Sequence record: MK250029.1
DNA: 64,000 nt
Direction: 5' to 3' (one strand)
Part shown: positions 24,175-58,861 of the stretch, in pieces
Layout: each line of letters starts with the position of its first letter
Numbering within the stretch: the stretch's first letter is position 1
The notes under the pieces: model-generated
The model's input: only the letters and a program-made list of their open reading frames with translations
What the model was told of the DNA's origin: nothing
The model's database searches: none
Position numbers and translations under genes: made by a program

Positions 24175-24216
24175 TATTGTTAATGAAATAATAAACAATT
24201 AAAAATATAAAGAAAA

Positions 24217-24543
24217 ATGAGAGCAAATTTCACAACAGTTATCAAAAAGAGAGCAATTAAAAATGTACCAGCATTTCATGAGTTCTCTATGAGACAGATT
24301 AAGGTTATTAGTAATTCAGCTAATTATCCAAATTCTGTTACATTGTCTATGGACATTTATTGTGATAATGTTGATGGATATATTTTCAATAATGCATCTA
24401 CAAATGAGCAATATGCACTTACTGCAATTCAACTCAGTGAAGCATTACAGAAGATGATAAATAATAGAAAATGTTATAAGCCTAATAGTGAATCTGATTT
24501 GCTTAGACTTACATTTGATATTATTGAATCTTTTAAATTTTAA
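24217..24543 (+). CDS. Hypothetical protein, 108 aa
   Basis: ORF track. Confidence 0.7.
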   Translation: MRANFTTVIKKRAIKNVPAFHEFSMRQIKVISNSANYPNSVTLSMDIYCDNVDGYIFNNASTNEQYALTAIQLSEALQKMINNRKCYKPNSESDLLRLTFDIIESFKF

Positions 24544-24554
24544 TTGATTTAATG

Positions 24555-24583
24555 TAGACAATAATAAGATATTAGTATATAAT
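24555..24583 (+). promoter_or_regulatory. Sigma70-like promoter TAGACA-N17-TATAAT upstream of the tRNA
   Basis: Exact 17-nt spacing. Confidence 0.5.
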
Positions 24584-24803
24584 ATATAAATTGTTTAATG
24601 AAACAAATTAATGAATTTAAAATTAAATTTANNNNNNNNNNNNNNNNNNNNNNNNNAATTAATAATAAATAACATATAAATAATATAATAATTAAAAACA
24701 AACGCTTATTTAATTTTCGTAGCGTTATGGATAAGTTGAATGTAGAATTCAGAAATTCCTTTTAGGACGAAGATACACCACATGGCGAGGTGGTGGAATT
24801 GGT

Positions 24804-25111
24804 AAAGTGTTTGCCTGCATTAATTTGTAGAATCCATCAAATTCAGTATCAGTTAGGATTAAATTTTGAATATGAGTAGTCGCTATTGACAAAAATATTG
24901 ACAATAATTAAATTATTGTTACCTGAGGAATAAGTGTTTATTAAATAAACAACGAAGAAGCTGACTAAGAAAACCTAAGGTCTTCATAAGAAGATAGCTT
25001 GGTAATACTGAGCCAAGATAATTTTAATTATAAGGTGCAGAGACTATACGGTGGGAACTAATAGCAAGTTAAGATATAGTCCAAACTTTATAGAAATATA
25101 AAGAGTTTTTG
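24804..25111 (+). mobile_element. Group I intron in the tRNA D-loop (308 nt, no ORF)
   Basis: P1 GGUAAA/UUUGCC puts U.G at the 5' splice site; P7 GACTAT 25042-25047 pairs with ATAGTC 25076-25081; terminal G 25111. Confidence 0.85.
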
Positions 25112-25126
25112 AGACACGAGGGACTT

Positions 25127-25466
25127 AAAAAATTTGAGTGCTCTATTGAGAAATCATAGAAGTAGAATCTCCCTAACGAAACGGAAACCTAATTATTGGT
25201 GACAATAATGGTGGTGACGAACTCACTAAGTTGTTATAGAACGCGAATCTATATTAAATGTAAATTGAAGTGTTACAGCATAAATGGCGAAGAGACTATA
25301 GAGGAGATACCTAAGTTAAAGTACACAAAGAATAATCATTTTTGATTATCACTATATATGAAGAATTTATAATAAGGAATGCGCATTACTTTAATATGGT
25401 AGTAAAATAGTCCAGACTACAACATCTTAATTTTAAGGTGGCTTATGTTAAAGTAAGAGTAGTAAG
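25127..25466 (+). mobile_element. Group I intron in the anticodon, U^AA (340 nt, no ORF)
   Basis: P1 ACUUAAA/UUUGAGU with U34.G; P7 GACTAT 25294-25299 pairs with ATAGTC 25407-25412; terminal G 25466. Confidence 0.88.
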
Positions 25467-25519
25467 AAAATCCCTTGGACAGTAATGTCCGTGCCGGTTC
25501 GATCCCGGTCCTCGCTACT

Positions 25520-25556
25520 AAAGTCTGATAACTAATATAGTTATCAGACTTTTTCT
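25520..25556 (+). terminator. Intrinsic terminator after the tRNA
   Basis: AAAGTCTGATAACTA-A-TATAGTTATCAGACTTTTT. Confidence 0.8.
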
Positions 25557-25596
25557 TTTTTATAATATATATAAATTATAATTAATAATTTTAATC

Positions 25597-26733
25597 ATGA
25601 TTACAATAACAGAACAATATATAAAGGATTATAAAGATAAGTTAGATAAAATCGCAAAGTCATTCGATTTGGGTAAACAGAAAATAATCGTTGAAGAATT
25701 ATCTATTAAAGTTTCAGCACCAGATTTTTGGGATGATTTTGAAAATGCAACAACTATTACAAAGGAACTTAATACAGCAAAAGAAAAGATTAAAGATGTT
25801 TCACTTATCAATATGTTAATAGATGATCTTGAAACTGCTTTAATGTATTATAAAGAGTTTGAAGGTAAGGATGAAGAAGAACTTGTTAATCTTGCTAATG
25901 ATGAATTAATTAAAGAATTTAAAATATTTGAAAACAAATATAGATTTGTAGATCCTACTGATTCATTGGGTGCAGTATTAGATATTAATGCAGGTGCAGG
26001 TGGAACAGAAGCAAATGATTGGGCAAATATGTTATTCAGAATGTATGATATGTGGGCTAAATCAAATGGTTATAAATTTAAGATTTTATATTATTCAGAA
26101 GGTGATAAAGTAGGTATTAAAAATGTATCTATTGAAATTACCGGTAATAATGCATATGGTACATTAAAAGGTGAAACTGGTGTTCATCGTCTTGTTCGTG
26201 TTTCCCCTTATAATGCGCAGGGAAAGAGAATGACAAGTTTTGCGGCAGTTTCTGTTGTTCCGTTGGTAGATAATTCAATTAAAGTTGAAATTGATGAGTC
26301 TAAATTAACAATAGATACATTTAGATCTTCTGGTGCAGGAGGACAAAATGTTAATAAAGTTGAATCAGGTGTACGTGTAAATTATATGTATACAGATCCT
26401 GATACAGGTGAAACTGAAAAGATTCAGGTTGCAAATACAGAAACACGTGATCAACCAAAAAATAAGGAACGTGCAATGCAGATTCTTAAATCTATTCTTT
26501 ATAAAAAAGCGTTAGATAAACAACTTGCAAAGAAAAAGGAAATTGAAGATGCTAAACTAAAAAATGAATGGGGTGCACAGATTAGATCTTATGTATTTGA
26601 TGATAAGCGTGTAAAGGATCATCGTACTGGTTATCAAACAACTGATGTAGATTCTGTTATGAATGGAAATTTAAATGGATTTATAGAATCTTATAATAAT
26701 TGGATAATTGAGCAGGAAAATAATAAACTTTAA
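25597..26733 (+). CDS. prfB: Peptide chain release factor 2, 378 aa
   Basis: GAGGTEANDW, GETGVHRLVRVSPY (SPF-like specificity tripeptide), SGAGGQNVNKVES, QIRSYV; no programmed frameshift. Confidence 0.93.
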   Translation: MITITEQYIKDYKDKLDKIAKSFDLGKQKIIVEELSIKVSAPDFWDDFENATTITKELNTAKEKIKDVSLINMLIDDLETALMYYKEFEGKDEEELVNLANDELIKEFKIFENKYRFVDPTDSLGAVLDINAGAGGTEANDWANMLFRMYDMWAKSNGYKFKILYYSEGDKVGIKNVSIEITGNNAYGTLKGETGVHRLVRVSPYNAQGKRMTSFAAVSVVPLVDNSIKVEIDESKLTIDTFRSSGAGGQNVNKVESGVRVNYMYTDPDTGETEKIQVANTETRDQPKNKERAMQILKSILYKKALDKQLAKKKEIEDAKLKNEWGAQIRSYVFDDKRVKDHRTGYQTTDVDSVMNGNLNGFIESYNNWIIEQENNKL

Positions 26734-26790
26734 TATATATTCATTATATAAGTATTTAATGAATTATTTTTCTATTTAAATAAAAATGTG

Positions 26791-26798
26791 TATCTTTG
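26791..26798 (+). promoter_or_regulatory. Bacteroidota-type -7 promoter box
   Basis: TTAAATAAAAATGTG-TATCTTTG. Confidence 0.7.
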
Positions 26799-26838
26799 TA
26801 TTGTTAATAAAATAATAAACAATTAAGAATATAAAGAT

Positions 26839-27057
26839 ATGAAAATTAAGGTTGGTAGAAATAATGAGTTCGTAGAACTTGAAGAATATGATTCAATTGT
26901 AATTATTGATGATAATGGTCATGAATTTCGTATCTCTCCTACACAGAAATGTTGGGGTAAGGGTTTTGAAATTAATGATCCTGATGGAAGTTTGGTAATT
27001 CGTCCATGTGTATCTAATGAAGTAATGGTATTTTCATCTTCAGAAGTTGGTTTGTAA
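26839..27057 (+). CDS. Small hypothetical protein, 72 aa
   Basis: ORF track. Confidence 0.7.
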   Translation: MKIKVGRNNEFVELEEYDSIVIIDDNGHEFRISPTQKCWGKGFEINDPDGSLVIRPCVSNEVMVFSSSEVGL

Positions 27058-27136
27058 ATTATAACTTTCATTAATAACGCAATCACAATAATTATTATTT
27101 TACAGTTTGATTTTAAACTAAATTTAATTATTATAT

Positions 27137-27688
27137 ATGAGTTGTCATACTTGGGTTTACAAACGTATTGATTCAATGTCTCGTGAAGAGATTAATCAAG
27201 AAATTGATTGTGTTATTAATGAACGTTTATCTCGTGCATACATGAGTGAAAATGAAGAGGAATATGCAAATAAAATGGTTAAATTAACAAAAGACAGTTC
27301 AATTTCTCCATTATCATATTCAGATGCAATTAAACGATATAAAGAAGCACGATATGAAACATCACTTATTGTAAAGAAATTACAGGAAGCTAAACGTACA
27401 GGTGATTTATCTCTTATAACAGATATAAATGGATTTGATACAGCAGAAAATAATACATATCTATTTTTATGTAATGATATGCCATTTAGATGTTATGATT
27501 ATACAGATAAACAATGTTATAATAAAGATGAGCTTATTGAATTTGTACATACAGTTGAACCAAATAATATTGCAATATATGATGAAAATAATAATCAGCA
27601 TATAGGTATTCCTGTAGACATAGATGAACGAATATCTGATTTTTTTGATAAACATGGTATTAACAATTTATTAATTGAATTTGGTTGA
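27137..27688 (+). CDS. Hypothetical protein, 183 aa
   Basis: ORF track; MSCHTWVYK start. Confidence 0.75.
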   Translation: MSCHTWVYKRIDSMSREEINQEIDCVINERLSRAYMSENEEEYANKMVKLTKDSSISPLSYSDAIKRYKEARYETSLIVKKLQEAKRTGDLSLITDINGFDTAENNTYLFLCNDMPFRCYDYTDKQCYNKDELIEFVHTVEPNNIAIYDENNNQHIGIPVDIDERISDFFDKHGINNLLIEFG

Positions 27689-27689
27689 T

Positions 27690-28142
27690 ATGAGAACAAA
27701 TATAGATTTACATCCTATTGCTATAGGATATACAAATTGTGATATTGAACTTGATTCATTTTCATTACTTTGTTGTCTTGATGAAATAGGGTTTACATAT
27801 CCAAAAACAGACAAATATTTAAATGTAGGTGCATGTAGGAATTTAAGAGAATTTAATGAGATACATGATAAAATATATTATTATATGATTTATGATTTTC
27901 TATGTTCTACATATGGTATTTCTGTAACATTTTTTGAGGGTGAATCTATTTCATATAATGAACGAGGTGTAATAGAAAAAGTTGAAGTTGATGGAATGGA
28001 TAAAGAATCTGATATATACAAGATTATATCAAATATGGTATTTGATAATATTAATATTGCATATAAGACTGTTGCACATATGATCGTATCAGATTTAAAT
28101 TGGAGACATATTCAAAAGAAAAATTTTTCTAAGATAAAATAA
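27690..28142 (+). CDS. Hypothetical protein, ~150 aa
   Basis: ATG 27690 directly follows the previous stop. Confidence 0.65.
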   Translation: MRTNIDLHPIAIGYTNCDIELDSFSLLCCLDEIGFTYPKTDKYLNVGACRNLREFNEIHDKIYYYMIYDFLCSTYGISVTFFEGESISYNERGVIEKVEVDGMDKESDIYKIISNMVFDNINIAYKTVAHMIVSDLNWRHIQKKNFSKIK

Positions 28143-28212
28143 GACTTTATTATTAAACACATATATAAAGAATAATTAATTTAACATATTAACTTTTAAA
28201 TTTAGATTTAGC

Positions 28213-28776
28213 ATGGGATTATTTGAACTTTTTAATAAGAAAAATGCTGCAGATGTAAGTACATTGTTTACTGATGAAAATAAAGTTTCTATTTCAGCAG
28301 CAGATGCATATAAGAAGTCTCGCTATGGTATCTTGAAATCTGATAAGATGATGCTTGAAGAATTCTTTACAGATGTAAAACTTATGGTAGAGCAGAAGAA
28401 TATGGAGCGTAGTTATTGTGGTATGCTTCAGCTTGATGATGACATTATTAAGTTTCTTCCTCGTATTAAGGATCGGTTGATGCGTCAACTTGGATTTAAA
28501 GTAATCATTCTTGATGATAATTCTGTTATTACAAATAAAGAATTGAAGTCAGAAGATACAATTAAAACAGGTAGTACATTTGTTTTGCTTGTATGGAATA
28601 AACAGGCAATTGAGGAAGTTGAAGAAATGAAAGCAAACAATTTGTTGGAACCTATTTCAGATGACTCATCAATTGCAACAGAAACAGTAGATTCTATTAA
28701 GGATGAAAAGAAAGAGGAAATAACTCCTGCTATTTCTGGAAATTCTAATCCTATGAAGAAACATCTTAATAGTTAA
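28213..28776 (+). CDS. Hypothetical protein, 187 aa
   Basis: ORF track; AAGACT-N17-TATAAA at 28141-28169. Confidence 0.75.
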   Translation: MGLFELFNKKNAADVSTLFTDENKVSISAADAYKKSRYGILKSDKMMLEEFFTDVKLMVEQKNMERSYCGMLQLDDDIIKFLPRIKDRLMRQLGFKVIILDDNSVITNKELKSEDTIKTGSTFVLLVWNKQAIEEVEEMKANNLLEPISDDSSIATETVDSIKDEKKEEITPAISGNSNPMKKHLNS

Positions 28777-28794
28777 AAAAAAATTGTTAAAATA

Positions 28795-28823
28795 TAGACT
28801 TTTTAAATATTAAGACATATAAT
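28795..28823 (+). promoter_or_regulatory. Sigma70-like promoter TAGACT-N17-TATAAT
   Basis: Exact spacing; no ORF before the terminator at 29241. Confidence 0.5.
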
Positions 28824-28829
28824 ATATAA

Positions 28830-29280
28830 AATAAATATAGTGATACTAAATTTAAATATGTTTGATAAGTTATATATTTAAGTCATTGGAAGAATTTAAA
28901 TTATAACATACATATAAAAATTTGATTAAATTATATTTATAAAAAAGATAAGATTTAGATAATTATTTTTCTATATATTTAATATATAGTTTTCTTAGGT
29001 TAACTTCACATATATTATATGTTATTAAGTTAAATATCTAAATAATAAGAATAGAGAAAATGGTGATTATATGATTATACATAAGATGTTTTTTAATTAT
29101 CCTTAGTTTTTAAATGTATAATCATTTCCGTTTAAATGTTTTGGTTTTGGATAATTAACAATCATTTAAACAAATTAAAAAGAAGGGAGTGTTTATCACT
29201 TAGATAAACACAAAAGAAGAAAAGGAAAGATAGATGATAAGAGTGAAAGTCGTTGTGATAACGGTTTTCACTCATTTTTT
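28830..29280 (+). ncRNA. Candidate structured ncRNA of unknown class
   Basis: ORF-free unit between a promoter and a terminator; stems 29071-82/29114-25, 29130-38/29163-71 and 29189-97/29203-11; 10-bp loop-loop complementarity. Confidence 0.4.
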
Positions 29281-29281
29281 T
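29241..29281 (+). terminator. Intrinsic terminator
   Basis: GAGTGAAAGTCGTT-GTGAT-AACGGTTTTCACTC plus T-run. Confidence 0.75.
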
Positions 29282-29316
29282 ATTATTTAATATTTTTATA
29301 TTTAAATAAAAATGTG

Positions 29317-29324
29317 TATCTTTG
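29317..29324 (+). promoter_or_regulatory. Bacteroidota-type -7 promoter box
   Basis: TTAAATAAAAATGTG-TATCTTTG, same context as 26791. Confidence 0.7.
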
Positions 29325-29363
29325 TAATATACTATAATAGTAATTATTAAAATTAATTTATAT

Positions 29364-30953
29364 ATGAAATATTTGTTGAATTGGATCGAAAAAGAATTAA
29401 ATCCAGAACGGCATGTGAGTTCAAAAACAACATCATCTGAATATTATTATTTTTATGGTGCAAAAGTTCGATTTGCTGATCATATTTCAGATAGAAATGA
29501 TAGTGATTTGGAAATTATATTAGTAAAGGATTTAACTGGTCAAAATAAACATTATCTGATAAAGGAGCAGAATTATCCTGTAATGGTATCTGTTCCTGAC
29601 GTAAAAACTTTAAAAATTGTATTATCTACATTTATATTCCAATTTAAGAATAGATATTCAGATAATATAGTAAAAGAAGCAAATAAGTCAGAGGAGAATA
29701 AAAAAATATTAAATACATGTTTAAATCAGCTACGTTCAAATAATAATGCTAATTTAGATATATTTCAAACATTTGATAAATGCATTTATAGTATTATTCC
29801 TCAATGGCATAATATGAAACAAATATATAGAATTATATTCATGCATTTATTTAAATTATGTGGTGATATTGACAAGATTAAGGATATTATTGATATTGAA
29901 TTTCCGAATGATAATCAAAATGATTGGCATCATAAGAATACTAATGATATTATTAATATATTAGTAACATATTTTCCAGATGATTATAATATCAGAAATA
30001 TTATTGGATTAGACGAAACTATTAGTCCTAAAGAAAAATTTGCTAATTGTTTTAATGAATACTATAAGAATCTTGATGTTAATATAGAAGATATGAAGGA
30101 AGAAGATAAATCTAAATTCTTAAATGCATTTGGAAGTCTTCTTGCATTAGATACAAAAAATAAATATGCTAAATGTTCAGATCATCAAAAGAAGTATATC
30201 CGTTCATTACTTAATGAACATATATCATATGATAATATTTTGAAATTTGTGAATAGTATATTTGATGTTTTATTTACACCAAAGATGAAACATAAAAATG
30301 ATGCACCACAAATAAAAATTATTGTTGATAAATTCTTACGGATGTATAATATTGGAATTATTAAATTTCCAAATGAATATGACTTTGATTCTACTTATAA
30401 CAATAATTTTAATCATATTGATGTAATACAGGAAGAATCTACTGATATTGAAAAAACTACTGATGATACTACTATTAATGAAAATATAGAAGTAACGGAA
30501 AATAAGGAACCATGTAATGATATTCAATATGAAACTATAACAGATTATATTCCTGATACTGATATTACTATTAAAGATTCATATAATTATGCATCTACAG
30601 AATTTGATGATATTCAAGATATTCATGAAATGTTTGAACAGAATCAAATTAATATACTTAATGATGTAATTAAGAAAATTAATGATACCAATAAGTATAC
30701 ATCATTTGAAACTAGACGTATTACTGATATATTTGCTTCACATTATTCAGATATATGGGAGAAACTTACATGGACACAAAAAGAACTTTGTTCATCTATT
30801 ATAACAAATGAACGAATGAATTTGAGTGAAACTGATTATATTATCAATAAAATATTTGATAAAACATCGTTTAATTTCCCTGTAACGGAACTTTGTCGTA
30901 AATATATAAAAGAATATAGTCAACGTATAAAGGAGAGCCGTATGGCTGCTTAA
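29364..30953 (+). CDS. Multidomain hypothetical protein with an acidic linker, 529 aa
   Basis: ORF track; no TAG. Confidence 0.75.
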   Translation: MKYLLNWIEKELNPERHVSSKTTSSEYYYFYGAKVRFADHISDRNDSDLEIILVKDLTGQNKHYLIKEQNYPVMVSVPDVKTLKIVLSTFIFQFKNRYSDNIVKEANKSEENKKILNTCLNQLRSNNNANLDIFQTFDKCIYSIIPQWHNMKQIYRIIFMHLFKLCGDIDKIKDIIDIEFPNDNQNDWHHKNTNDIINILVTYFPDDYNIRNIIGLDETISPKEKFANCFNEYYKNLDVNIEDMKEEDKSKFLNAFGSLLALDTKNKYAKCSDHQKKYIRSLLNEHISYDNILKFVNSIFDVLFTPKMKHKNDAPQIKIIVDKFLRMYNIGIIKFPNEYDFDSTYNNNFNHIDVIQEESTDIEKTTDDTTINENIEVTENKEPCNDIQYETITDYIPDTDITIKDSYNYASTEFDDIQDIHEMFEQNQINILNDVIKKINDTNKYTSFETRRITDIFASHYSDIWEKLTWTQKELCSSIITNERMNLSETDYIINKIFDKTSFNFPVTELCRKYIKEYSQRIKESRMAA

Positions 30954-30957
30954 AATA

Positions 30958-31006
30958 AGAAATAGGATAGATATACTAATACAGTTATCTATCCTATTTT
31001 ATTTTT
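30958..31006. terminator. Bidirectional terminator
   Basis: AAATAGGATAGATA...TATCTATCCTATTT between convergent genes. Confidence 0.75.
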
Positions 31007-34000
31007 TATATTGCATAACCAGAATTTCCAGTTGATTTATTATCAGAATTTGCATTTTGTTTTGCTTGCCATGCTCTATCCATTGCAGCTTTATCAACAT
31101 CCTAAAATTTATGTATATCATCAACTATATATGTATTTCGTTTAGGTTGTTTTATTGATTGCATCTTCATATGTTTATGAGGCGGAATATGAGGCTTATT
31201 ATCCTATAACTTCATATTTTTCTATCTACTTCGTAATTCATCATATGTTGATTCTATAATATCTGCAAGAGATAACATATCTTCTGTACTTATATTATCT
31301 AATTCATTAACATCTATTGACGTTAATGCTTTTAATTTTTCTGTAAGTTTTTTATCATCTGTAATATTTACTAATTTCATTTCTGGTTTATAATCATTAT
31401 TATCAGTAATATTATCAAATAACATTGCAGAAGGAATATCATCTGTAATAACAGGTTTATTCATTACCATTTCTGATTTTTCATTAACAGATGTATTAGA
31501 AATAAATGGAATATTTGCAGTTGAACTATTATTAATATTCTATGTCATTTGCATATCAATAATACTTTCATTCTTTAATGGCTTACTCATTACCATCTTT
31601 GTTTTATATTCATTTGCATTTAATTCTGTCATACTCATACCAGGATTATTATCAACAAATTCTGTATGTGTCATCTGCATATTAGGTATAGACGAATCCA
31701 TATTTAATCTTGTCATATCCATATTAGATAATGAAGAATTTGATATTACTTCTGTCATTTTCATACTCGGATTTTCAGTAATCTAATCGATATTAGTCAT
31801 TTTCATATCAGATGTAGAAACATTCATATCAAGATGAATCATATCCATATTTGCAATAGATATATCATTATTAGGAGTTGTTAATATCATATCAGGTAAT
31901 GATGTATCAGTTATAGGGTAAATAAAATCCATATCAGAAGTAGAAGTATTCATATCAAGATGTGTCATATCCATATTTGCTATAGATGAATCTTGTATTA
32001 ACTGTAACATCTAACCATTAACAGTAGAATTATTAGATATAAGCTTAGTCATATCCATATTTGCTATAGATACATTCTAATTTAATATTGTCATATCCAT
32101 ATTTGGATTTGTCTATTGAGAATTTAACATAACCATATCAGTAGGATTTGTCTAATCTGTAATTTCTACATTATGCATTAATATAGATGGTTTAAATGTT
32201 TCATTTTCTGTTGGAATTAAACCTGGTTTTGGTTTTGAAAGATACATATCCATTGTTGTCATTTGATTATGTGCCTAAGGTCTTGCATCACCTTCTAATG
32301 GTTGTAAATTATGATGTTCTTTACTAATAGTCTATGGATTATTTACTAATACCATTGATGAATTACTTACATCCTATAATACTGGTATAAATGTCATAGA
32401 ATTATGGTCTGAATTTATATTATTAGTAACTAAATTCATTGATGCATTACTTGTATCTATATATGTTGAATCATTACTCATATTCATATCGTTATGATCC
32501 GTATTTAATTCAGGCTTTATATACTCCATTGAATTATGTTCTGTATTAATCTATGTTTCTACAAATGCCATTGAATTATGTTCTGTATTCATAACAGGTG
32601 AAATATAATTCATATCATTATGATCTAAATTCATTTCTGGTTCTACATAATTCTAATAAGACTTACTAAGATTAAATTCTGGTTCCACATAATTATGATG
32701 TTCTTTCTGTAGATTCATTTCTGGTTCTACATAATTCTAATCAGCTTTATCAAGATTAAATTCTGGTTCCACATAACTATGATGATTTTTATGTAAATTC
32801 ATTTCTGGAGAAACATAATTCATATCATTATGAACTAAATTCATTTCTGGAGAAACATAATTCTAATCAGATTTATCAAGATTAAATTCTGGTTCTACAT
32901 AATTATGTTTATTTTTGTCTAAATTCATTTCAGGTGAAACATAATTCTAATCAGCTTTATCTAAATTCATATATGGTTTAATATAATCCATAATACTATG
33001 GTCTAAATTAAACTCAGGCTCAACATATGTTTGATGTGGTTTATTAAGATTAAACTCTGGTTTAATATAATTCTATTTAAATTTATCGAGATTAAATTCT
33101 GGTTTCACATAATTCATATCATTATGATCTAAATTCATTTCTGGTGAAATATAATTCATATCATTATGTTCTAAATTAAATTCTGGAGTTATATAATCAT
33201 ATTCTGGTTTATCTAGATTTTCATCAAGCTCAGTATAATTCTATGATATTTTATCTAAGTTTTCATTCAGATGAATATAATTATGTTCAGGTTTTTCAAG
33301 ATTTTTCTAAATAGAAGGATCAATTAATCTAAAACTTGCATCACTTCCAATAATCTGAATTTTTGGTTCTAACTTAGTTACAGATGTATCTATAATACCT
33401 GGATCTATTATATTATAATATGCATTACTTCCTACAACATAAGTATTTCTTAACATATGTAATAACATTACCTTTATACGATTTTTCATCTATTGCTAAG
33501 CTTTAACAACATCTGGACCGTATAAAAGTTGCTCATGATCATATATATAAGACCATTCATATGGTCTCTATAAATCATTATAGAACTAATCTCTGTCAGG
33601 ATTTCTAGAATCACGAACTAATACAGGTCTTGAATGAATAACTTTTTTAAGATATTTTTTCAAATCCTTCCATGAACTTATAGTATAAAGATTATCTCTT
33701 ACATTTGCTTCATGCCAACTATTATCTGGTAATTGTGGACCATATACATCTGCAGTTCCATATAATTTGTCATAATCTGCATTATCACCAACTTTATGTG
33801 TAATTTCTTTATCAAAATACGCAGTATATTCAGATGGCATCATAAACATACGTCTCATCCACCTTGTTCTGAAATTCGCATGATTATCTGCGTTAGTTGA
33901 TGTATAGTCATTTCTTTCTGATATAGACTAAAAATCAGAAATCCAGTTAACTGTATTTTTTACATTCGCATTCTATTTACTATCAGTCTAATTAGGATCT

Positions 34001-35040
34001 AATGCATCTATCTTTTTCATTAAGCCGTTAGAATAGAATGTTTTTACATTTTTTACAGAAATTGTTATTTTTGTTTCGGCATCCTTATGTTCATCATATG
34101 CAGTAGCATATTCATTATCCCATATTGATTCAATATCAATTTCACATGGACCGCATTCTAACGCATATATAGGAAAATCGTTTTGCTCTACACTATATAC
34201 AGCAGTTGCATTTCCTGTTGATTTATCCCATTTATAACCAGTCTATAAAATACGTCTATCAAATACATAGATAATCATTTTGAAATATCTATATATATCT
34301 GGTAATATCCATCTTTGCCAAACATCATCATATGCAGCTTTTCTATACATTTCCAATAATGTACGAATTTTCAAATCAATCCCTTCATAACATTCTAATG
34401 TAATCTTCGCATCCTTAAGTCGTACTCCTTTTCCCGGTTCAAATGATGTCAACTTTTCTAATCCAGTAATTTTTTTGAACAGATAAGGCATACTTCTCTA
34501 TATTTCATAAAGGCCTTGAACAAAGGTTTTAATATAAGATGCGCGCGCATCTTCATTTCTGTTCATCAGATAATTATATGTATTATAATGTTCCTAATTA
34601 CTCCAATTTTCCGTATTATCAAATTCTAAAAAATTTAAATCAAGTAAACCCATTGGAAATTGATCATAATCTTCATAATATATGTTATTATAAAGACTTG
34701 TTTTCTATTGGTTCTTTATTGTTTCTGTATCAAGAACTGAACACCCCCAATCACCAAATTCAACTTTAAACATAAGTCGAGTAGGATCTTCAAAACCTGA
34801 TCTGAATACTTCAGAAGGCATATCAGCACCATATTCATTTCCCATATGAAATCGTTCCATGATTTCATTCTGTTCCATAAATCGTCCAGATGATAAAATC
34901 CACGATTCACTGTCAGTTACTTTCTACTCTAATTCATTTGTTTTAGTATCTCCAGTAAGTAATGAATTAAATCCTTTTAAAAAATTGTATGCAGAATTTG
35001 TCTTTTTATTTAAGCCTTTTAATGTACTAAAAATACCCAT
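31006..35040 (-). CDS. Large putative tail/baseplate structural protein with 14-aa tandem repeats, 1344 aa
   Basis: Track ORFs 34243, 33586, 33307, 31783, 31540 and 31222 are all one frame joined by TAG; the globular N-terminal part (FEDPTRL...CYEGIDLKIRTLLEMYRKAAYD) looks tail-tube-like, by eye only. Confidence 0.6.
32480..33300 (-). repeat. Coding tandem repeats, 42 bp/14 aa: (Q/H/M)NY(V/I)(E/S/K)PE(F/M)NLxxxx
   Basis: Recurrent aaattcatttctgg / agattaaattctgg...acataatt units with 42-bp period. Confidence 0.85.
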
Positions 35041-51208: not shown

Positions 51209-51583
51209 ATGATGCAATTAAAACTTTTAGGAGTACTTCAGGATTATGATAGTCCTTATGTCTCCTTATATAGAGACGATAATAGTCAAAATTTATATTT
51301 GGCTGTGGAACAAAACTCAGATAAACCAAAAGAGTTTTGCACATTGTTACTTCATGTGTCTAAAAGATTAGTCGAATATTATTTGCAGAATAAAATTGGC
51401 CTCCGAGAAATCTATAAGAATGTGAAAAGTAAATATATTTGGTTTCACAAAAAAGATCAGATTTGTACATTGGTAGATGTAGGTAATGAAGATGTGTCTA
51501 AATACATAGATATTGATGATGATATGTTTGATCCTGATTTTTGCAATCATGAAGCTAGCATAAAGTATTATTTAAACAAGTAA
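51209..51583 (+). CDS. Hypothetical protein, 124 aa
   Basis: ORF track. Confidence 0.65.
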   Translation: MMQLKLLGVLQDYDSPYVSLYRDDNSQNLYLAVEQNSDKPKEFCTLLLHVSKRLVEYYLQNKIGLREIYKNVKSKYIWFHKKDQICTLVDVGNEDVSKYIDIDDDMFDPDFCNHEASIKYYLNK

Positions 51584-51812
51584 AATTACTAAATGTACTA
51601 GAGAGTGACTTGAAATATGATCGAACACTTGATTTCAAGAAAGCCTTAAAAATAAAGAGATAGAACTTGACGTTGGTGCAACTTTGTTACAACATAAGAA
51701 GAATGACATTTTAGTAAGGTTTTCAAAGATTTCTCGTGCTTACAGCGTATAGCTGCTTAGCACATTATTGAATTATTAACGAACTATTGATATAATATAT
51801 AACTATATTTTT

Positions 51813-52712
51813 ATGAATGCAAAACCAATTATCAAATGGGTAGGTGGAAAAACCCAATTATTAAATACAATAAATGATAATCTTCCACAAAATATATCAC
51901 ATTTTAACACATATATGGAACCATTCATTGGTGGTGCTGCAGTATTATTTTATATTGTTCCAAAATTACCTAATATAAAAAATGTGTTTATAAATGACTT
52001 AAATTATAAATTGACAAATTTATATACAGTTGTAAAAAATAAACATTTAAAATTAATTAATCAATTAAAAACAATACAGGAAGAATATAGAAAATCTGAA
52101 GATCCGAAAATGTTTTATTATAATACCCGTGATTCATTCAATATATATGATATGAATATGGAACCAGATGCAGATGTATTACATGCAGCTGAATTTATAT
52201 TCTTAAATAAGACATGTTTTAACGGATTATACAGAGAGAATTCAAAAGGTGAATTTAATGTACCATGGAATAAGAATGTAAATGTTTGTATATGTGATGA
52301 AGAAAATATTAAAGCAGTACATAATTTTTTCATTAAATACAATGTTCAAATATCTACTGGTACATATAATGATTTTTTTAAAGGTAAAGGAATGTATATG
52401 AAAAATGCGTTTGTTTATATGGATCCACCTTATAGACCTATTACTAAATCAGCTGCATTTACGTCATATACAAAATCAGGTTTTAATGATAATAATCAAA
52501 AAGAATTAAAAATTTGGGTTGATATTTTGAATAGTAGTAATGCTTATTGTATGTTAAGTAATTCAGATCCAAAAAATTATGATGTAAATGATACGTTTTT
52601 TGATGACTTATATTCAGATTATAACATAATTAGAGTAAATGCTAAAAGATCCATCAATTCAAAAGGAAATGGACGTGGTAGTATAACAGAAATATTGGTA
52701 AAAAATTATTAA
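51813..52712 (+). CDS. dam: DNA adenine methyltransferase (Dam/D12 class), 299 aa
   Basis: KWVGGK, EPFIGG, FIFLNKTCFNGLYRENSKGEFNVP and YMDPPY; TTGAAT-N17-TATAAT at 51768-51796. Confidence 0.9.
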   Translation: MNAKPIIKWVGGKTQLLNTINDNLPQNISHFNTYMEPFIGGAAVLFYIVPKLPNIKNVFINDLNYKLTNLYTVVKNKHLKLINQLKTIQEEYRKSEDPKMFYYNTRDSFNIYDMNMEPDADVLHAAEFIFLNKTCFNGLYRENSKGEFNVPWNKNVNVCICDEENIKAVHNFFIKYNVQISTGTYNDFFKGKGMYMKNAFVYMDPPYRPITKSAAFTSYTKSGFNDNNQKELKIWVDILNSSNAYCMLSNSDPKNYDVNDTFFDDLYSDYNIIRVNAKRSINSKGNGRGSITEILVKNY

Positions 52713-52743
52713 TAAAATAAATACTTAAACATATATCTGATAT

Positions 52744-53736
52744 ATGAAATTTATACATAATCTGACTGAATAGAATAATATATTGTCATATAATGAAATA
52801 TTAAATACAATTAATAACATTAATGAAGAATATCATGAAGTAACAAATTTTGATAATATGATAAAAGATGTTGCTAAACAAATATATTATTCTAATTATA
52901 CTGATTTTTATACAGGTTGGAATTGGTTTATTAAAGAACAAACATGTTTAAAAGTTAATACTGAATATAAATCAGATAATACAGTTTATAAAGATAATAT
53001 AGGATGTCCTATATATATTAAATTTGATGATTTAGAAAATAATACATATTTTGCTGTATAGATGAGAGATAATACGTATAACATACCAATATATGTTAAC
53101 AAACATTATAACTTATCTATATAGCAATATGCATATAAATTAAAACATGAAATTACACATATACGTACAATGTATTCTAAAATAGATTCAAATCCGTTAG
53201 ATTCATTAAAGAATAGATCATCAAGTATTGAATTGGATAATATAAGATTAATAAATAATAAACAATTTCCATTTATATATAATGTTTGTTATTTATTATC
53301 ACCAACTGAATAGCAAGCACGTATAAATGAATATATATTTTTTATAAAAGATTATTTAAAAGAAAATGATATAGATAATGTAAACAGTCATAAATTAATA
53401 AATGAATTAATTGAAAAAGGATATGAACATACATTATTAAAAGATTTCTTTGATATATATGAAAAATTAGAATTTATGGTAAATGCTTAGATTTATATAT
53501 AGGTAATATCATTAGGATATGTGTTATAGAAATATAATTTATTTAAATCTAATATAACAGATGCAGATTTACTGAGATTAGAATCTGATAGAACAGGAAT
53601 GATATATAAGTATATTAAATCAGATGAAGATAATTCATATAAAATATTAGAATTTTTAAAATAGAATTTATCTGATTACTATACAAAATTAAAAAACGTA
53701 ACATACAAAACATTAAAAGAAAATAACATAATTTAA
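52744..53736 (+). CDS. Putative HExxH zinc metallopeptidase, 330 aa
   Basis: LKHEITH and downstream YLLSPTEQQARINE; frame continuous through TAG. Confidence 0.55.
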
Positions 53737-53742
53737 TTATAT

Positions 53743-54216
53743 ATGAAGACTAATTTAAATGGTGGTTGTTTATTACCAAATGAAGAAATTATTGTAAAGG
53801 ATGGACTTGTATTGATGTCTGAAATTAAAGTAGGTGATAAAGTTTTATCACATGATGGTGATTACCATGAAGTAGAACATGTATGGAATTTTGAGAAACC
53901 TACATACTATGTATCACTTTCAAACGGTGATCATATCGAATGTTCAAATACACATAGATTCTTGGTAAATAAGAATAAGCTTGAGAAAGAATCATCATGG
54001 AAAACTGCTGAAGAACTTCATGATGGAGATGAAATCTTTACAATGAGTACCATTAATATGGACATTAATGAGAAAATTAAGTTTAATAAAATAAAGATTG
54101 CCCGTATATTCAAATCAGGAATTAATAATCATGTGATTGACATTACTGTTAAAGATACACATACATATATTTCTGCTAATGGTATTGTTAATCATAATTC
54201 AGGAACTAATTTCTGA
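53743..54216 (+). CDS. Free-standing mini-intein (Hint domain, residues 9-152) with 8-aa and 5-aa exteins
   Basis: Block A CLLPNEEI..DG, block B IECSNTHRF, block F VIDITV..HTY, block G HN|S; followed by TGA TAA TGA. Confidence 0.88.
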   Translation: MKTNLNGGCLLPNEEIIVKDGLVLMSEIKVGDKVLSHDGDYHEVEHVWNFEKPTYYVSLSNGDHIECSNTHRFLVNKNKLEKESSWKTAEELHDGDEIFTMSTINMDINEKIKFNKIKIARIFKSGINNHVIDITVKDTHTYISANGIVNHNSGTNF

Positions 54217-54231
54217 TAATGAATTATAATA

Positions 54232-54630
54232 ATGAATTATAAAGAAACATATTTAAAACCAGAAATTGCATTCTTACTGAAAAAGCATAACTATAATATC
54301 GATAAAACTCGATATATGGTAAACAGAGACGGAACATTAGTTGAATCTACTAATGAATTATAGAAACATTATAATCATTTAGAATTAGCTTATAATCCTA
54401 ATGCAGAAGAAGTAATCGATTATTTCAAAAAACAATCAATTTATATTAACATTAATAAAATAGATGATAATAAATGGGAATGGATTATTTCATTTGGTAA
54501 GAAATCTGTATATTCTGGTGAAACTGCAAACGGAAATATCGGGCATAATCTTCCAGAATCACGTCAATTTTTTAACAATGAAAAAGACGCGTATTATGAT
54601 GCAGTTATAGAACTTATTATTTTAATTTAA
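54232..54630 (+). CDS. Hypothetical protein, 132 aa, distant paralog of 56188-56586
   Basis: Open with one TAG; similar P..x.V.(E/D)(W/Y)..K..I.IN segment. Confidence 0.65.
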
Positions 54631-54688
54631 TATATAAGAGGATATGGATTTAATTCTATATTCTCTTTTTTCTTTCAAATAAAATATG

Positions 54689-54696
54689 TATCTTTG
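54689..54696 (+). promoter_or_regulatory. Bacteroidota-type -7 promoter box
   Basis: TCAAATAAAATATG-TATCTTTG, after a terminator hairpin (~54637-54670). Confidence 0.7.
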
Positions 54697-54726
54697 TATA
54701 AAATATGAATTAATAATTATAAGAGA

Positions 54727-55980
54727 ATGGATACAAAAACATATATGGCAATTAAAGATTGTCTTAGAATAATTATTCAAGGATCTGAATTTGAAAACAA
54801 TTTATTTGCAGTCGGTGGATGTTGTAGAGATGAGATTTTAGGAAATAATATAAAAGATTTAGACCTTGTTGTTTCATTGGAAAACGGCGGTATTAAATTT
54901 GCAGAATGGTTGGAAAAGAATCATTATACAAAAGGAACTGTTGTGACATATCCTCGATATGGAACTGCTATGTTCAGACTAAAGGATTTTCCTAATGAAG
55001 AACTTGAAGTTGTACAAACAAGAACTGAAATTTATACAACAGATTCAAGAAAGCCAGATACAACATTCGGTTCACTTAAGCAAGATTGCATGCGTAGAGA
55101 CCTTACAATCAATGCAATTTATTATGATATTTCAAACAGTAAATTTATTGATGTTACAAACAGATCATTTGATGACATTAAAAATAAAATTATTGTAACA
55201 CCATGTGAACCAGATCAGACATATATTGATGATCCTCTTCGCATTATGAGATGTGTAAGATTTGCATGTAAACTTGGTTGGAATATAGATAAAAATGTAT
55301 TCAACAGTATGAAGAAAAATATAGATAGACTATCTATTATTTCAAAAGAAAGAATACAGGATGAACTTATGAAAATATTGAATACACCAAATTCAAAATT
55401 AGGTATTGATTATCTATTTGATATTGATGCAATGAAATTTATTTTCCCTTGTATAAATCATAATATTCCTGGACATTTTATTGATTTAGATAAGACATAT
55501 AAACCTTATTTAAAATTAGCATTAATTAATATTAATAATTCTAATGTTAAAGAAGATTTAATTAATCTTAAATTTTCTACATATGAAATTAATACAATAA
55601 TGAATTATATTAATGTATATCATGATATGTCGAAAATTAATAATCAATCATCACCCAGTGATATTAGACGAATGTTATATAAATGCAAAACATTAAATAT
55701 ATTCTTTGATGTATATAACATGATAGTAATATATGAATCAAATAACAATAAATTAAAATCAATTCATGATGCTATTTCGAAAGGAATGAATTGTAATGAT
55801 TTAATTAAGATGTTTGAATATAAGTTACCGGTTAATGGTAATGATATTATGGATGTATTTAATATTAAACCAGGACCAAAAATTAAAGAATATCTTGATA
55901 AAAGTTTGGATATTGTCTTTGATAATCCTTATATAACGAAAGATGAAATTTTAAATAAGTTAAAAGAGATTAAAAATTAA
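54727..55980 (+). CDS. cca: Class II tRNA nucleotidyltransferase (CCA-adding enzyme/poly(A) polymerase family), 417 aa
   Basis: VGGCCRD, DLDLVV, RRDLTINA, DDPLRIMR and SKERIQDEL motifs. Confidence 0.88.
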   Translation: MDTKTYMAIKDCLRIIIQGSEFENNLFAVGGCCRDEILGNNIKDLDLVVSLENGGIKFAEWLEKNHYTKGTVVTYPRYGTAMFRLKDFPNEELEVVQTRTEIYTTDSRKPDTTFGSLKQDCMRRDLTINAIYYDISNSKFIDVTNRSFDDIKNKIIVTPCEPDQTYIDDPLRIMRCVRFACKLGWNIDKNVFNSMKKNIDRLSIISKERIQDELMKILNTPNSKLGIDYLFDIDAMKFIFPCINHNIPGHFIDLDKTYKPYLKLALININNSNVKEDLINLKFSTYEINTIMNYINVYHDMSKINNQSSPSDIRRMLYKCKTLNIFFDVYNMIVIYESNNNKLKSIHDAISKGMNCNDLIKMFEYKLPVNGNDIMDVFNIKPGPKIKEYLDKSLDIVFDNPYITKDEILNKLKEIKN

Positions 55981-56031
55981 AACAATTTATTGGTTAAACA
56001 TTATAAACATTAATTAAAACAGTTATTAGAT

Positions 56032-56181
56032 ATGGATTTAAATATTACACAGAGAGAAGGAATTAAGAAGTGTCTCTATGAGGATTTAAAGAAAATGTAT
56101 GATGCATTTATTTTGACTGATAGAGATAAGGTAGAAAGTGTATTTAATGAGTTTTTGAATAAATGTGAACGTTATATTTAA
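56032..56181 (+). CDS. Small hypothetical protein, 49 aa
   Basis: ATG to TAA filling the operon gap. Confidence 0.5.
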   Translation: MDLNITQREGIKKCLYEDLKKMYDAFILTDRDKVESVFNEFLNKCERYI

Positions 56182-56187
56182 TTTGAT

Positions 56188-56586
56188 ATGAATTATTTTA
56201 CTCATACAGTAGATGATAATATTTGTAAGTGGTTACTTGATAATAAGTTTCCACTTACAACGTGTATACGAAATGATCATGATGAATCATTATATTATAC
56301 ATTGCCATATGAAGATTCTGATGGATGGCAATATTGTGATGCATATTATAAACCTACATATTTTGATGTAAAAGAATGGTTATATAAAGAACATAATATA
56401 CTTATTAATTCGAATATTTATACTGATAGATTTTCTGTACAAATTAGATATAAATCAAAATCAGATAAGTATTTTGGAAATTGTTGGGAAATTGGTTATG
56501 GTTGTAAAACATTTGAAGATTGTTTAAAATCTGCAATTGAATATATTATTGAAAATAATATACTGAACGAAAAGAGTACAGAATAA
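56188..56586 (+). CDS. Hypothetical protein, 132 aa
   Basis: ORF track. Confidence 0.7.
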   Translation: MNYFTHTVDDNICKWLLDNKFPLTTCIRNDHDESLYYTLPYEDSDGWQYCDAYYKPTYFDVKEWLYKEHNILINSNIYTDRFSVQIRYKSKSDKYFGNCWEIGYGCKTFEDCLKSAIEYIIENNILNEKSTE

Positions 56587-56591
56587 TTTAA

Positions 56592-57134
56592 TTATGTTAA
56601 TGGATGAAATATTTCTTTTTGTTCTTTAATATATTTTTTTGCTTCAGGTAGATTATCAAATAAAATATCATTTTCATCTGGTTGACAGTAAACCATATTT
56701 CCATCATCTTCTATAATATAGATAATACCGAATGTATCTTGCATTGATGTTGGTTCAATTGGTTTACTGAATATGATTTTTCTTATTTGATTATCTACAA
56801 TTACATAGTAAATATTTGCATTTGCATCTATATTACTAGTCCATTTACCGATATAATTTATTTTATCATCATATGATGATAATTCATTATTCATGACATT
56901 ATCACCAAAAAATGAAGCTAAGTAATTATTATTTGCATTTACTTTATCTATGTTATCTCTAATAAGTCCATCAGATGTTAAATTAATTTGTGATTTATTA
57001 TCATCTGGATAAAAATATCCACCTATTATAATATCATCAAATTCATCATTATCTTCTTTTGGATTTAACAACATATCAGATAAGTTATTTAACTGAGGAA
57101 TATATTTATGTAATAATTTATAGGTATATTTCAT
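56592..57134 (-). CDS. Hypothetical protein, 180 aa
   Basis: ORF track; lone minus-strand gene in a plus-strand run. Confidence 0.65.
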   Translation of the reverse strand: MKYTYKLLHKYIPQLNNLSDMLLNPKEDNDEFDDIIIGGYFYPDDNKSQINLTSDGLIRDNIDKVNANNNYLASFFGDNVMNNELSSYDDKINYIGKWTSNIDANANIYYVIVDNQIRKIIFSKPIEPTSMQDTFGIIYIIEDDGNMVYCQPDENDILFDNLPEAKKYIKEQKEIFHPLT

Positions 57135-57172
57135 TTAATTTATTATATATAAACTTTAAAATATTTATTTAT

Positions 57173-57487
57173 ATGATTATAACATATACAGCATTTGATG
57201 GAAAGGTATTTAATGATCAAAAGGAATGTGAAGACTATGAATATAAATTAAAACTTTTAGGAGTTGCATATTCAGAATTCAGTAAATTTCTTGATAAAAT
57301 TCCAGAAGATTATAATGATAATCTTTGGATATGTAAAGAAAAATTAGAAATTAATGATGCATGTGGACAAGAACTTCCTACAATTGGAGATACTATAAAG
57401 GTTTTAACAAAAGATGATTTATCACATATGAGAGTAATTAAGACTCTGCTTAAAAATTTTAAATTGGATGATAATGGAAACAACTAG
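57173..57487 (+). CDS. Hypothetical protein, 104 aa
   Basis: MIITYTAFDGKVFNDQKECEDYE; start reassigned from the track's 57059. Confidence 0.7.
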   Translation: MIITYTAFDGKVFNDQKECEDYEYKLKLLGVAYSEFSKFLDKIPEDYNDNLWICKEKLEINDACGQELPTIGDTIKVLTKDDLSHMRVIKTLLKNFKLDDNGNN

Positions 57488-58022
57488 AAATGTTATAGAT
57501 AAAATTAAATATCTATATAAAAGGTTATATAAAGCCGAATTATTTTCTTCATCGTTAGCAGTTCGTATGAATGAGCGTGATGACTTTTATGAATATTCTA
57601 GACAACATCAACCAGCGTTTAAGATAGCTATGATGGAATTACTTAGTCATCCAGATGAAATGAATGCTCGTATTCCTTTTTACTGTTGTTATATATTACG
57701 TGAAAATGATTTTCTTAAATTATATGAAAATAAAAAGGATAAATTACCTTTAAATGAAGATTATGAATGGGATGAATGTAATTTATGGTTGAATCATTTT
57801 AAATCAACAAAAAATATAGATTACTACAAAGATTACAAAGAATATAAAAGATATTTAAATTTGAATTTTAAACCATTTAATCTATTTACTGGTAAAGATC
57901 CAAATCCTACATATGAAGAATATATCAGAAAAAGAGATTCTATCGATTCAATAAATAAATTTGTAACTAAATTAATAAAAGATAATAATATAAAGATAAC
58001 ATGGAAGTACGAGACGAAGTAA
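57468..58022 (+). CDS. Hypothetical protein, ~184 aa
   Basis: ORF track. Confidence 0.65.
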   Translation: MIMETTRNVIDKIKYLYKRLYKAELFSSSLAVRMNERDDFYEYSRQHQPAFKIAMMELLSHPDEMNARIPFYCCYILRENDFLKLYENKKDKLPLNEDYEWDECNLWLNHFKSTKNIDYYKDYKEYKRYLNLNFKPFNLFTGKDPNPTYEEYIRKRDSIDSINKFVTKLIKDNNIKITWKYETK

Positions 58023-58342
58023 AAAAGCGTATGGAAGAATCGTTAAAAGGATGTAAGATTATAGATAAACAAGAAACACCTAAAACTACAATACTTCCAG
58101 ATCTTTCAGATCCTGCTGAATATAAAAGATGGTTTAATATGGGTCAAAAAGAAGCAATGGTAAATCTACAGAAATATGTTGATTTAAACAAGAAAAATAA
58201 TATTAACTTTGAAACAGAGTTTAACTATCTTTATACGAATGGTGGAATTTGCGGATGGAATAAAATACCATATAAAACATTTTATAATATTATATATGGT
58301 AAACAGCGTGTTGATTTTAATGGTAATTTAACAGGTAATTAA
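58001..58342 (+). CDS. Hypothetical protein, 113 aa
   Basis: ORF track. Confidence 0.6.
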   Translation: MEVRDEVKKRMEESLKGCKIIDKQETPKTTILPDLSDPAEYKRWFNMGQKEAMVNLQKYVDLNKKNNINFETEFNYLYTNGGICGWNKIPYKTFYNIIYGKQRVDFNGNLTGN

Positions 58343-58345
58343 AAC

Positions 58346-58492
58346 ATGAATGTAGAACGAGCATTATTAAAATTAAATAAATTAAAATCTGAAATGGAAT
58401 TAGAATGCTTTTATAACACCAATGTTGAATATAAAGCAAAACCATGGTTAGAATTGGTGGAAGATATTATAGCATTCTTAGATGGTAAATAA
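58346..58492 (+). CDS. Small hypothetical protein, 48 aa
   Basis: ATG to TAA filling the operon gap. Confidence 0.5.
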   Translation: MNVERALLKLNKLKSEMELECFYNTNVEYKAKPWLELVEDIIAFLDGK

Positions 58493-58507
58493 AATTTATA
58501 TAAAGTT

Positions 58508-58861
58508 ATGTCATATAATTTAATACCAAAATATTATACATTATATCCTGAGTGTTCGAGTTCAACTTATTTATATTTTCATGATGAACCTTATGCATAT
58601 TGGTTAGAGAATAGTGAGTATAAAGTTTATGAATGGGTTTTATTTAAAGAATACAATGATTATAAATCTGTATGTCATCCAAATGATTGTATATCTGCAA
58701 TAAGTTATAATGATCTTATTGATTCATTTAAAACATATTCATTTTATGAGAATATGGATCGTGAAAAGATGTGCAGAACATTTAGACAAAGATCATTAGA
58801 AACAGAATTTGGACCTGAATCTGAACCTTATTGGGATTTTGAAGATTTTGTTGATGAATAA
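58508..58861 (+). CDS. Hypothetical protein, 117 aa
   Basis: ORF track. Confidence 0.65.
   Translation: MSYNLIPKYYTLYPECSSSTYLYFHDEPYAYWLENSEYKVYEWVLFKEYNDYKSVCHPNDCISAISYNDLIDSFKTYSFYENMDREKMCRTFRQRSLETEFGPESEPYWDFEDFVDE

Follow-up and report, generated by a model that had tools for sequence, protein, structure and literature searches.

Genomic setting of the intein gene

At positions 53743..54216 (+) of the DNA analysed here, a 64,000-nucleotide stretch referred to as the window, lies a gene of 157 codons plus TGA that encodes a free-standing mini-intein. The window is part of the roughly 540-kb genome of Prevotella phage Lak-C1 (MK250029.1), a gut megaphage in which TAG is recoded; in that genome the intein gene occupies about 360948-361421. 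The first eight residues of the ORF, Met1 to Gly8 (MKTNLNGG, 53743..53766, +), form an N-extein vestige and are followed by the intein proper, which extends from Cys9 to His151-Asn152 (144 aa, 53767..54198, +). Five further residues, Ser153 to Phe157 (SGTNF, 54199..54213, +), constitute a C-extein vestige and precede three consecutive stop codons, TGA TAA TGA (54214..54222, +). On the 5' side, an in-frame TAA (53734-53736) is located two codons ahead of the ATG. As TAG is absent from the ORF and the stops on either side of it are TAA and TGA, its limits hold with or without TAG recoding. A 2-kb segment containing the ORF matches Lak-C1 (MK250029.1) and Lak-A2 at 100% identity and is kept at 81-99% identity in 15 of 15 Lak-A/B/C genome records (about 540-550 kb).

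The GC content of the window is about 25%. An alternative genetic code in Lak phages is named in the literature, and reading TAG as sense raises the number of residues in ORFs of at least 150 aa from 8,548 to 18,642. This use of TAG is patchy across positions 1-64000: the block 15029-30953 and most of 51209-58861 are TAG-free, and structural-looking blocks contain 6-32 TAG per gene (17 in the large terminase gene, 11308-13461, and 32 in the ORF at 31006-35040). No tRNA genes were found within the 64-kb window. The ORF at 31006-35040 (1344 aa, minus strand) also contains 42-nt (14-residue) tandem repeats in at least 15 copies, especially at 32461-33303, with further 42/84/126-nt periodicities at 31586-32118, and a 69-nt repeat array is present at 338-927.

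Upstream of the intein gene lie a Dam-type (D12) DNA methyltransferase gene (51813..52712, +) and orf330 (52744..53736, +), in which eight TAG codons are read as Gln. The methylase gene is a conserved upstream neighbour: the intein gene usually adjoins it, and the two are immediate neighbours in five other contigs (L040, L041, L049, L050 and L051). orf330, with an HExxH motif, is an insertion that only Lak-A/B/C have; it is missing from other strains and relatives, and contigs from RNA libraries join 52741/52759 directly to 53694/53670. Downstream, orf132 (54232..54630, +; one TAG) is a recurrent neighbour (Lak-A/B/C, L040, L045, L049) and is followed by the gene for a CCA-adding tRNA nucleotidyltransferase (54727..55980, +). 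No Pfam or PHROG family matched orf330, orf132 or their homologs, and no signal for RecA or another conserved enzyme was found in either ORF. Neither orf132 nor the methylase offers a hint as to what the intein gene does.

In Lak-C1, with TAG read as Gln, orf330 and orf132 are in-frame with the intein ORF, an arrangement that, in a genome that recodes TAG, could point to a hidden host protein with longer exteins masked by stop recoding, a frameshift, an intron or an assembly error. The shared frame is a coincidence. Read-through into the neighbours was rejected, as the separating stops are TAA and TGA-TAA-TGA rather than TAG, orf330 is an indel that is not an extein, and both neighbours are in different frames in Lak-B1, an observation that already refutes a hidden host protein. 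No intron-like RNA was found in an Rfam E-value scan of 48-60 kb, which gave only a chance snoRNA-like match. Furthermore, the short boundaries (3-11 residues before Cys1, the first residue of the intein, and 2-7 after His-Asn) are seen again in each of the four Lak genomes from GenBank that were read in detail, in IMG/VR contigs and in independent Logan/ENA assemblies. Since identical boundaries are obtained from independent genomes and assemblies, the sequencing frameshift that a sequence-only reading of the locus had raised as a way of hiding longer exteins is excluded, and the probability of a hidden host protein is negligible.

Four metatranscriptome libraries, each from a different study, yielded contigs that cover the ORF (for example, a 958-nt contig that spans 53684-54640); as assembled contigs, these record presence only, not transcription, its strand or its level, and DNA carry-over is possible. 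A promoter-like motif, …AATAAAA-TATGTATCTTTGTAT… with TAnnTTTG, occurs in six intergenic copies on the + strand of the window (18848-18897, 23546-23609, 24129-24192, 26753-26816, 29279-29330 and 54651-54714), each 30-50 nt 5' of a TAG-free ORF, with the CCA-enzyme gene among them. Many unrelated RNA-library contigs stack on the last of these copies, at 54666-54699. The TAnnTTTG element, which we take to be the Bacteroidota -7 consensus, was not found upstream of the intein gene or the methylase gene, and motifs of this type are probably host-type (Bacteroidota) promoters of genes that can be read in the standard code. As the Lak-C1 intein protein has no Gln at all, TAG usage is uninformative about the timing of its expression.

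Fold and catalytic residues

The ORF matches the Pfam family Intein_splicing (PF14890) with 39.7 bits, above the curated cut-off of 35.8 (E 5.6e-10), and its scores for Hint, Hint_2 and PT-HINT are all under their cut-offs. Among PDB sequences, the gp41-1 and Pho RadA mini-inteins match it best. An AlphaFold (AF2) model, calculated with 15 family members as input, adopts an all-beta HINT fold (pLDDT 82, pTM 0.74). In a Foldseek search, this model is matched by the NpuDnaB and gp41-1 mini-inteins (E 6e-9 to 9e-9, TM 0.7-0.8), and it also superposes on the Ssp DnaB mini-intein and on BIL and Hedgehog domains. The sole internal segment of low confidence is a linker loop at residues about 101-112 (54043..54078, +), the place at which larger inteins carry an endonuclease. 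In agreement with the earlier reading, an endonuclease domain is absent from both ORF and model, as 144 aa leave no room for one.

The Lak-C1 protein has the full class-1 set of residues: Cys9, which is Cys1 of the intein (codon 53767-53769, +), Ser68-x-x-His71 in block B (His71 codon 53953-53955, +), Asp133 and His140 in block F, the terminal His151-Asn152 pair, and Ser153 at the +1 position. The ORF is a complete, endonuclease-free class-1 HINT domain or mini-intein, exactly as the sequence-only reading had described it: canonical and free-standing, with 8+5 flanking residues, three stops and all splicing residues. A host protein in which it would lie in-frame, with exteins ligated to a functional product, is missing, because only 8+5 residues flank the intein, TAA and TGA-TAA-TGA bound the ORF, the neighbours are in other frames in Lak-B1, and an intact recombinase is encoded elsewhere.

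Descent from a recombinase intein

Relatives were collected with a word-indexed protein search and an exhaustive HMMER search of 1.84 billion cluster representatives. The word-indexed search returned 14 proteins of 149-160 aa, 56-84% identical and with the same architecture as the ORF; the homologs with equally short exteins for which the sequence-only reading had proposed a search do exist and are conserved. In the HMMER search, the next relatives (40-58% identity) are embedded in proteins of roughly 300-650 aa. The full-length embedding proteins that were scanned (P0022, P0024, P0031 and P0044) match PF00154 (RecA), and the proteins that embed the nearest relatives are, as judged from such matches, phage UvsX-type recombinases. 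Their junctions read …PTN(I/V)xxGG↓C … HN↓SG-x-x-Y (arrows mark the junctions). With MKTNLNGG homologous to …PTN(I/V)xxGG and SGTNF to SG-x-x-Y, the stubs KTNLNGG and SGTNF are identified by alignment as remnants of the recombinase insertion site. Four proteins (P0007, P0015, P0016 and P0018) join an intein part to unrelated sequence; they look frameshifted or chimeric (short contigs) rather than like natural fusions and were left out of the analyses.

In Lak phages the recombinase gene lies 122 kb from the intein gene (in Lak-C1, about 482.7-484.0 kb versus about 360.9 kb of MK250029.1). In Lak-C1 (L028, MK250029.1:481817-485509) and Lak-A1, the recombinase is one intact, intein-less ORF of 430 aa, and the empty site in Lak-C1 reads …GNVVSGG↓SGIIYNSS. 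In Lak-B1 (L038, MK250020.1:523500-527800, minus strand) and Lak-B4, the recombinase gene is fractured by a split intein. The pieces in Lak-B1 are an N-part with IntN (324 aa), a free-standing ORF of 463 aa and IntC with the C-part (245 aa). We infer that the 463-aa ORF is a putative homing endonuclease; it gave no Pfam match. The split and the intervening ORF map to the position of the 101-112 loop described above, and identity between the free-standing protein and the two intein halves is 55-56%.

A maximum-likelihood tree computed from 31 HINT domains groups the free-standing proteins as one clade (support 98/93), places the Lak-B split intein as sister to that clade (96/91) and nests both among recombinase inteins. 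HMM scores are 187 bits for the Lak-B intein and at most 114 for the others. The ORF belongs to the recombinase-intein clade but does not lie in the recombinase gene at the site GG↓SG.

Several other inteins were encountered in Lak and related phages. Many related recombinase genes in metagenomic data (P0019, P0021, P0026, P0037, P0042) hold two inteins about 10-14 residues apart, with the junction …HN↓SVGAYVPxxxxxGG↓C…; P0019 (147 aa) looks like the middle of a three-piece fractured recombinase, in which a 14-aa extein separates IntC of the first intein from IntN of the second. A second stand-alone intein of about 190 aa, P0027/P0028 (L046:3949-4533, L047, L048), is built from the degenerate C-part of an upstream intein, followed by a linker and then a complete intein that ends in HN↓SL. 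It belongs to another phage lineage, where a family-B DNA polymerase gene lies downstream of it, and is independently derived: its placement on another branch of the tree implies that orphaning happened more than once. The Lak-C1 genome is intein-rich. Outside the window it encodes a fractured DNA polymerase (L009/L014, MK250029.1 about 390.9-393.6 kb), the pieces of which are …GDTDS with IntN, a free-standing ORF of 378 aa and IntC with the C-part, and an NrdD-like protein with a contiguous mini-intein (L020, about 423 kb).

Purifying selection on the free-standing gene

The free-standing copies (149-160 aa) form one clade and are at least 55% identical. Every copy examined is intact, five IMG/VR contigs included, and the ORF is intact in 17 of the 17 sequences analysed despite dS values of 0.65 to more than 3. 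Pairwise dN/dS was calculated by NG86 for a genome of 25% GC, and dS is near saturation in the deeper pairs. Between Lak-C1 and Lak-B1, dN is 0.094 and dS 0.648 (omega 0.146); omega is 0.09-0.25 for pairs with usable dS and 0.19-0.51 within a subclade that lacks Asn152, described below. For comparison, the 56 reciprocal-best ORF pairs between the window and Lak-B1 have a median dS of 0.75 and a median omega of 0.25. Within this set the intein gene ranks 17th by omega and 19th by identity (83% versus a median of 72%), and among the six genes of the immediate neighbourhood it has the lowest omega and the highest identity. The recombinase exteins, by the same Lak-C1 to Lak-B1 comparison, are 74% and 59% identical. 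The intein gene is under strong protein-level constraint across lineages with saturated synonymous sites, whether a recombinase intein is present or not.

The copy in Lak-B4 (L004:4044-4517) is a mosaic, in which the protein encoded by the 5' half is identical to that of Lak-C1 and the protein encoded by the 3' half to that of Lak-B1, and indicates recombination between Lak lineages inside the intein gene. A different gene order is observed on a contig of 36% GC (L043:1982-5563), which carries genes for an intein-less RecA-like protein, ribosomal protein S21, an IF1-like protein, the intein and IMPDH. This contig represents the earliest-branching free-standing subclade, and the location of its intein gene, two genes downstream of the RecA-like gene, may be the ancestral position.

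Taken with the tree, these data make it probable that the intein invading the Lak-type UvsX/RecA-like recombinase has in the ORF an orphaned, extein-less paralogue, which purifying selection keeps as an independent gene. Of the suggestion, made from the sequence alone, that the ORF is a relic of a deleted host gene, the part that concerns origin stands, with a UvsX/RecA-type recombinase intein as the source; the part that concerns decay does not, given the omega of 0.09-0.25 and the intact state of all copies.

Variable exteins and a conserved patch

Across the 17 family members, Cys9, Cys67, His71, Asp133 and His151 are invariant. With regard to the redox or metal sensor that the sequence-only reading had listed as a possibility, Cys1 and Cys67 are common to the recombinase-embedded relatives too. 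The catalytic residues could be invariant for structural rather than catalytic reasons. Asn152 is lost in four of the 17 sequences (L040, L049, L050 and L051), which end in …INHSF, …INHSL or …INHCAN and in which His140 of block F is replaced by Leu, Cys or Asn. The loss of both residues means that this subclade has lost the machinery for C-terminal cleavage. The N-terminal catalytic centre is intact in every member of the family.

The exteins are variable. The N-extein ranges from MSN to 11 residues and is not conserved in sequence, and the C-extein has 2-7 residues, with neither the terminal Asn nor a +1 nucleophile in the four Asn-less lineages. The residue at -1 is Gly or Asn, and the one before it is Gly, Ala, Tyr, Phe or Ser. 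These observations do not favour the view that the Gly-Gly before Cys1 is ubiquitin-like, as the earlier reading had it; the dipeptide is inherited from the recombinase site …SGG↓SG….

In contrast to the exteins, a patch at codons 64-97 (53932..54033, +) is specific to the family and strongly conserved, with 25 of 34 columns at least 92% conserved. It contains a basic cluster (Lys77, Lys79 and Lys82) and an acidic cluster (Glu90, Glu91, Asp94, Asp96 and Glu97) with His93. Asn76, Lys77, Lys79, Lys82, Thr88, Glu90, Glu91, His93, Asp94 and Glu97 are unlike the recombinase-embedded relatives, as are Arg121 and Phe123 outside the patch. Relative to the remainder of the gene, dN in the patch is reduced 2-8-fold in most pairs, and dS is undiminished in most, so that synonymous sites still diverge; low dN with undepressed dS indicates a constraint on the protein. 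We read the patch as a putative family-specific functional surface, with the proviso that the family is a narrower clade than the comparison set, which may explain part of its conservation.

A proposed role for the released HINT domain

The protein of Lak-A/B/C most likely self-processes by splicing. In Lak-C1, the reaction would begin with an N-S acyl shift at Gly8-Cys9, proceed by transesterification to Ser153 and end with cyclisation of Asn152, setting free the 144-aa HINT domain along with a 13-mer by-product. The Asn-less subclade would be capable of N-terminal cleavage only. Both routes would lead to the same product, a free HINT domain that starts at Cys1, and we take this domain to be the selected molecule, with the invariant surface 64-97 as its probable site of action on a partner. 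The spliced peptide is not the functional output and cannot be the selected product, because the exteins vary and one subclade has lost the C-terminal cleavage machinery. The ORF is read here as an orphaned recombinase intein that is kept by selection for the HINT domain itself and is neither a peptide generator nor a decaying relic, which suggests that the intein fold has gained a role of its own. As a tentative proposal, the ORF may be a domesticated endonuclease-free intein that benefits the phage as a bare, self-released HINT domain through its newly fixed surface 64-97 and not through restoration of a host protein. It could act, for example, by binding or modifying a partner through N-terminal Cys/thioester chemistry or by interfering with the assembly of a rival split intein.

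Inteins are usually seen as purely selfish elements that are under selection only because a failure to splice destroys the host protein. That reason is absent here, yet the domain is more conserved than the recombinase from which it came. To our knowledge, no stand-alone mini-intein with a function of its own has been known, and the domesticated HINT domain, if confirmed, would be the first. Whether inteins can have functions of their own is directly testable with this 157-aa protein. The family also provides a natural series from splicing-competent to cleavage-only forms and an example of an intein leaving its host gene, and as a compact natural HINT scaffold close to a natural split intein it may interest protein engineers.

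Persistence without benefit to the phage, for instance by concerted evolution with the recombinase intein or by hitch-hiking in a mobile methylase cassette, is unlikely. Such persistence would be in keeping with the wealth of inteins and homing-endonuclease-like ORFs in Lak genomes, with the recombinant Lak-B4 copy and with the tight linkage to the methylase gene. However, the ORF lacks an endonuclease, no recombinase intein is available as a source for conversion in Lak-A/C or L043, and the free-standing copies form a clade of their own, separate from the Lak-B split intein. DNA-level drive, moreover, does not explain low dN combined with high dS.

Domain swapping of mini-inteins is established, and the contiguous intein could in principle pair in this way with IntN or IntC of related split recombinase inteins and divert their trans-splicing, either in a co-infecting rival phage or, in Lak-B, as a form of regulation. 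The ORF is indeed the closest relative of a natural split intein that is polymorphic among Lak phages, and the exteins of the ORF are dead-end stubs. That Lak-B carries both elements, that identity to the split halves is only about 55% and that the invariant patch 64-97 differs from the split intein all make such interference, taken as the reason for which the ORF is kept, quite improbable.

The dedicated device that the sequence-only reading had put forward, which would generate a bioactive 13-mer or pass the Gly-Gly thioester to an outside nucleophile, is very unlikely. Its attractions are the complete splicing set in Lak-A/B/C, the invariance of Cys1, His71 and Asp133, which may reflect selection on thioester chemistry, and the resemblance of the fold to the BIL2 domain of the Tetrahymena BIL-ubiquitin-like locus. 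Against these stand N-exteins and C-exteins that differ in length and sequence, four lineages without the Asn and the +1 nucleophile, a -1 position that may be Gly or Asn with the Gly-Gly explained by ancestry, and the absence of any attached cargo domain.

A neutral relic would be a recombinase intein that was duplicated or mis-homed, lost its exteins by deletion, is intact by chance and is heading for decay; this reading is already largely refuted and is very improbable indeed. The extein vestiges do prove descent from the recombinase intein, junk can be tolerated in large phage genomes, and one subclade is already without Asn152 and His140. Nevertheless, a neutral relic is incompatible with intact copies at such synonymous divergence, with an omega below that of the median gene of the window, with conservation above that of the recombinase exteins and with a kept position beside the methylase gene.

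Comparison with known systems

With UvsX/RecA-like recombinase inteins, the ORF shares one HINT sequence clade (40-58% identity), the catalytic blocks and the junctions GG↓C…HN↓SG. It differs from them in that only 8+5 residues flank it, no recombinase surrounds it, and it is located 122 kb away, beside a methylase gene. By homology it would be classed as a recombinase-clade intein, yet it lacks the defining intein feature of interrupting a host protein. The Lak-B recombinase allele has the layout of the fractured genes with split inteins described by Dassa et al. (2009, PMC2677866), namely an N-part with IntN, a free-standing ORF and IntC with a C-part. Unlike split recombinase inteins, the ORF is one contiguous 144-aa intein and persists where the recombinase is intein-free. 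Stand-alone 'Intein_splicing' genes are also reported from Jug jumbo phages (PMC12880540) and are, like the ORF, small separate ORFs in huge gut phages that consist of an intein-splicing domain only. The Jug genes are described between fragments of split host genes (nrdD, polymerase) and are parts of fractured genes, whereas the ORF does not lie between fragments and has its conservation and selection documented by the present analysis. The gp41-1 split mini-intein of a cyanophage (6qaz) is the best PDB sequence match and a top structural match, with a similar size and the same block-B Cys, but it resides in the gp41 helicase, is naturally split and is only about 24% identical.

BIL and Hog domains share the HINT fold, as seen in the matches to a C. 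thermocellum BIL domain (2lwy), Tetrahymena BIL2 (6tmm) and Hedgehog (6tyy). The Asn-less subclade could perform N-terminal cleavage only, as these domains do, although the likeness is confined to losses. BIL and Hog domains process an attached cargo domain, whereas the ORF has none and retains the full splicing set in Lak-C1. In the literature searched, which had most subscription journals outside its coverage, no description of a conserved endonuclease-free, extein-less mini-intein was found. Extein-less domesticated derivatives of inteins are known in the yeast HO/WHO endonucleases (Coughlan et al. 2020, PMC7282813), for which duplication and mis-homing are the proposed origin. Like these genes, the ORF is a stand-alone, intein-derived gene without exteins that is kept by selection. 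The HO/WHO proteins have kept the LAGLIDADG endonuclease, have acquired a zinc finger, are devoid of motif G and do not splice; the ORF is set apart from them in that it has neither an endonuclease nor an extra domain and most members of its family have an intact motif G.
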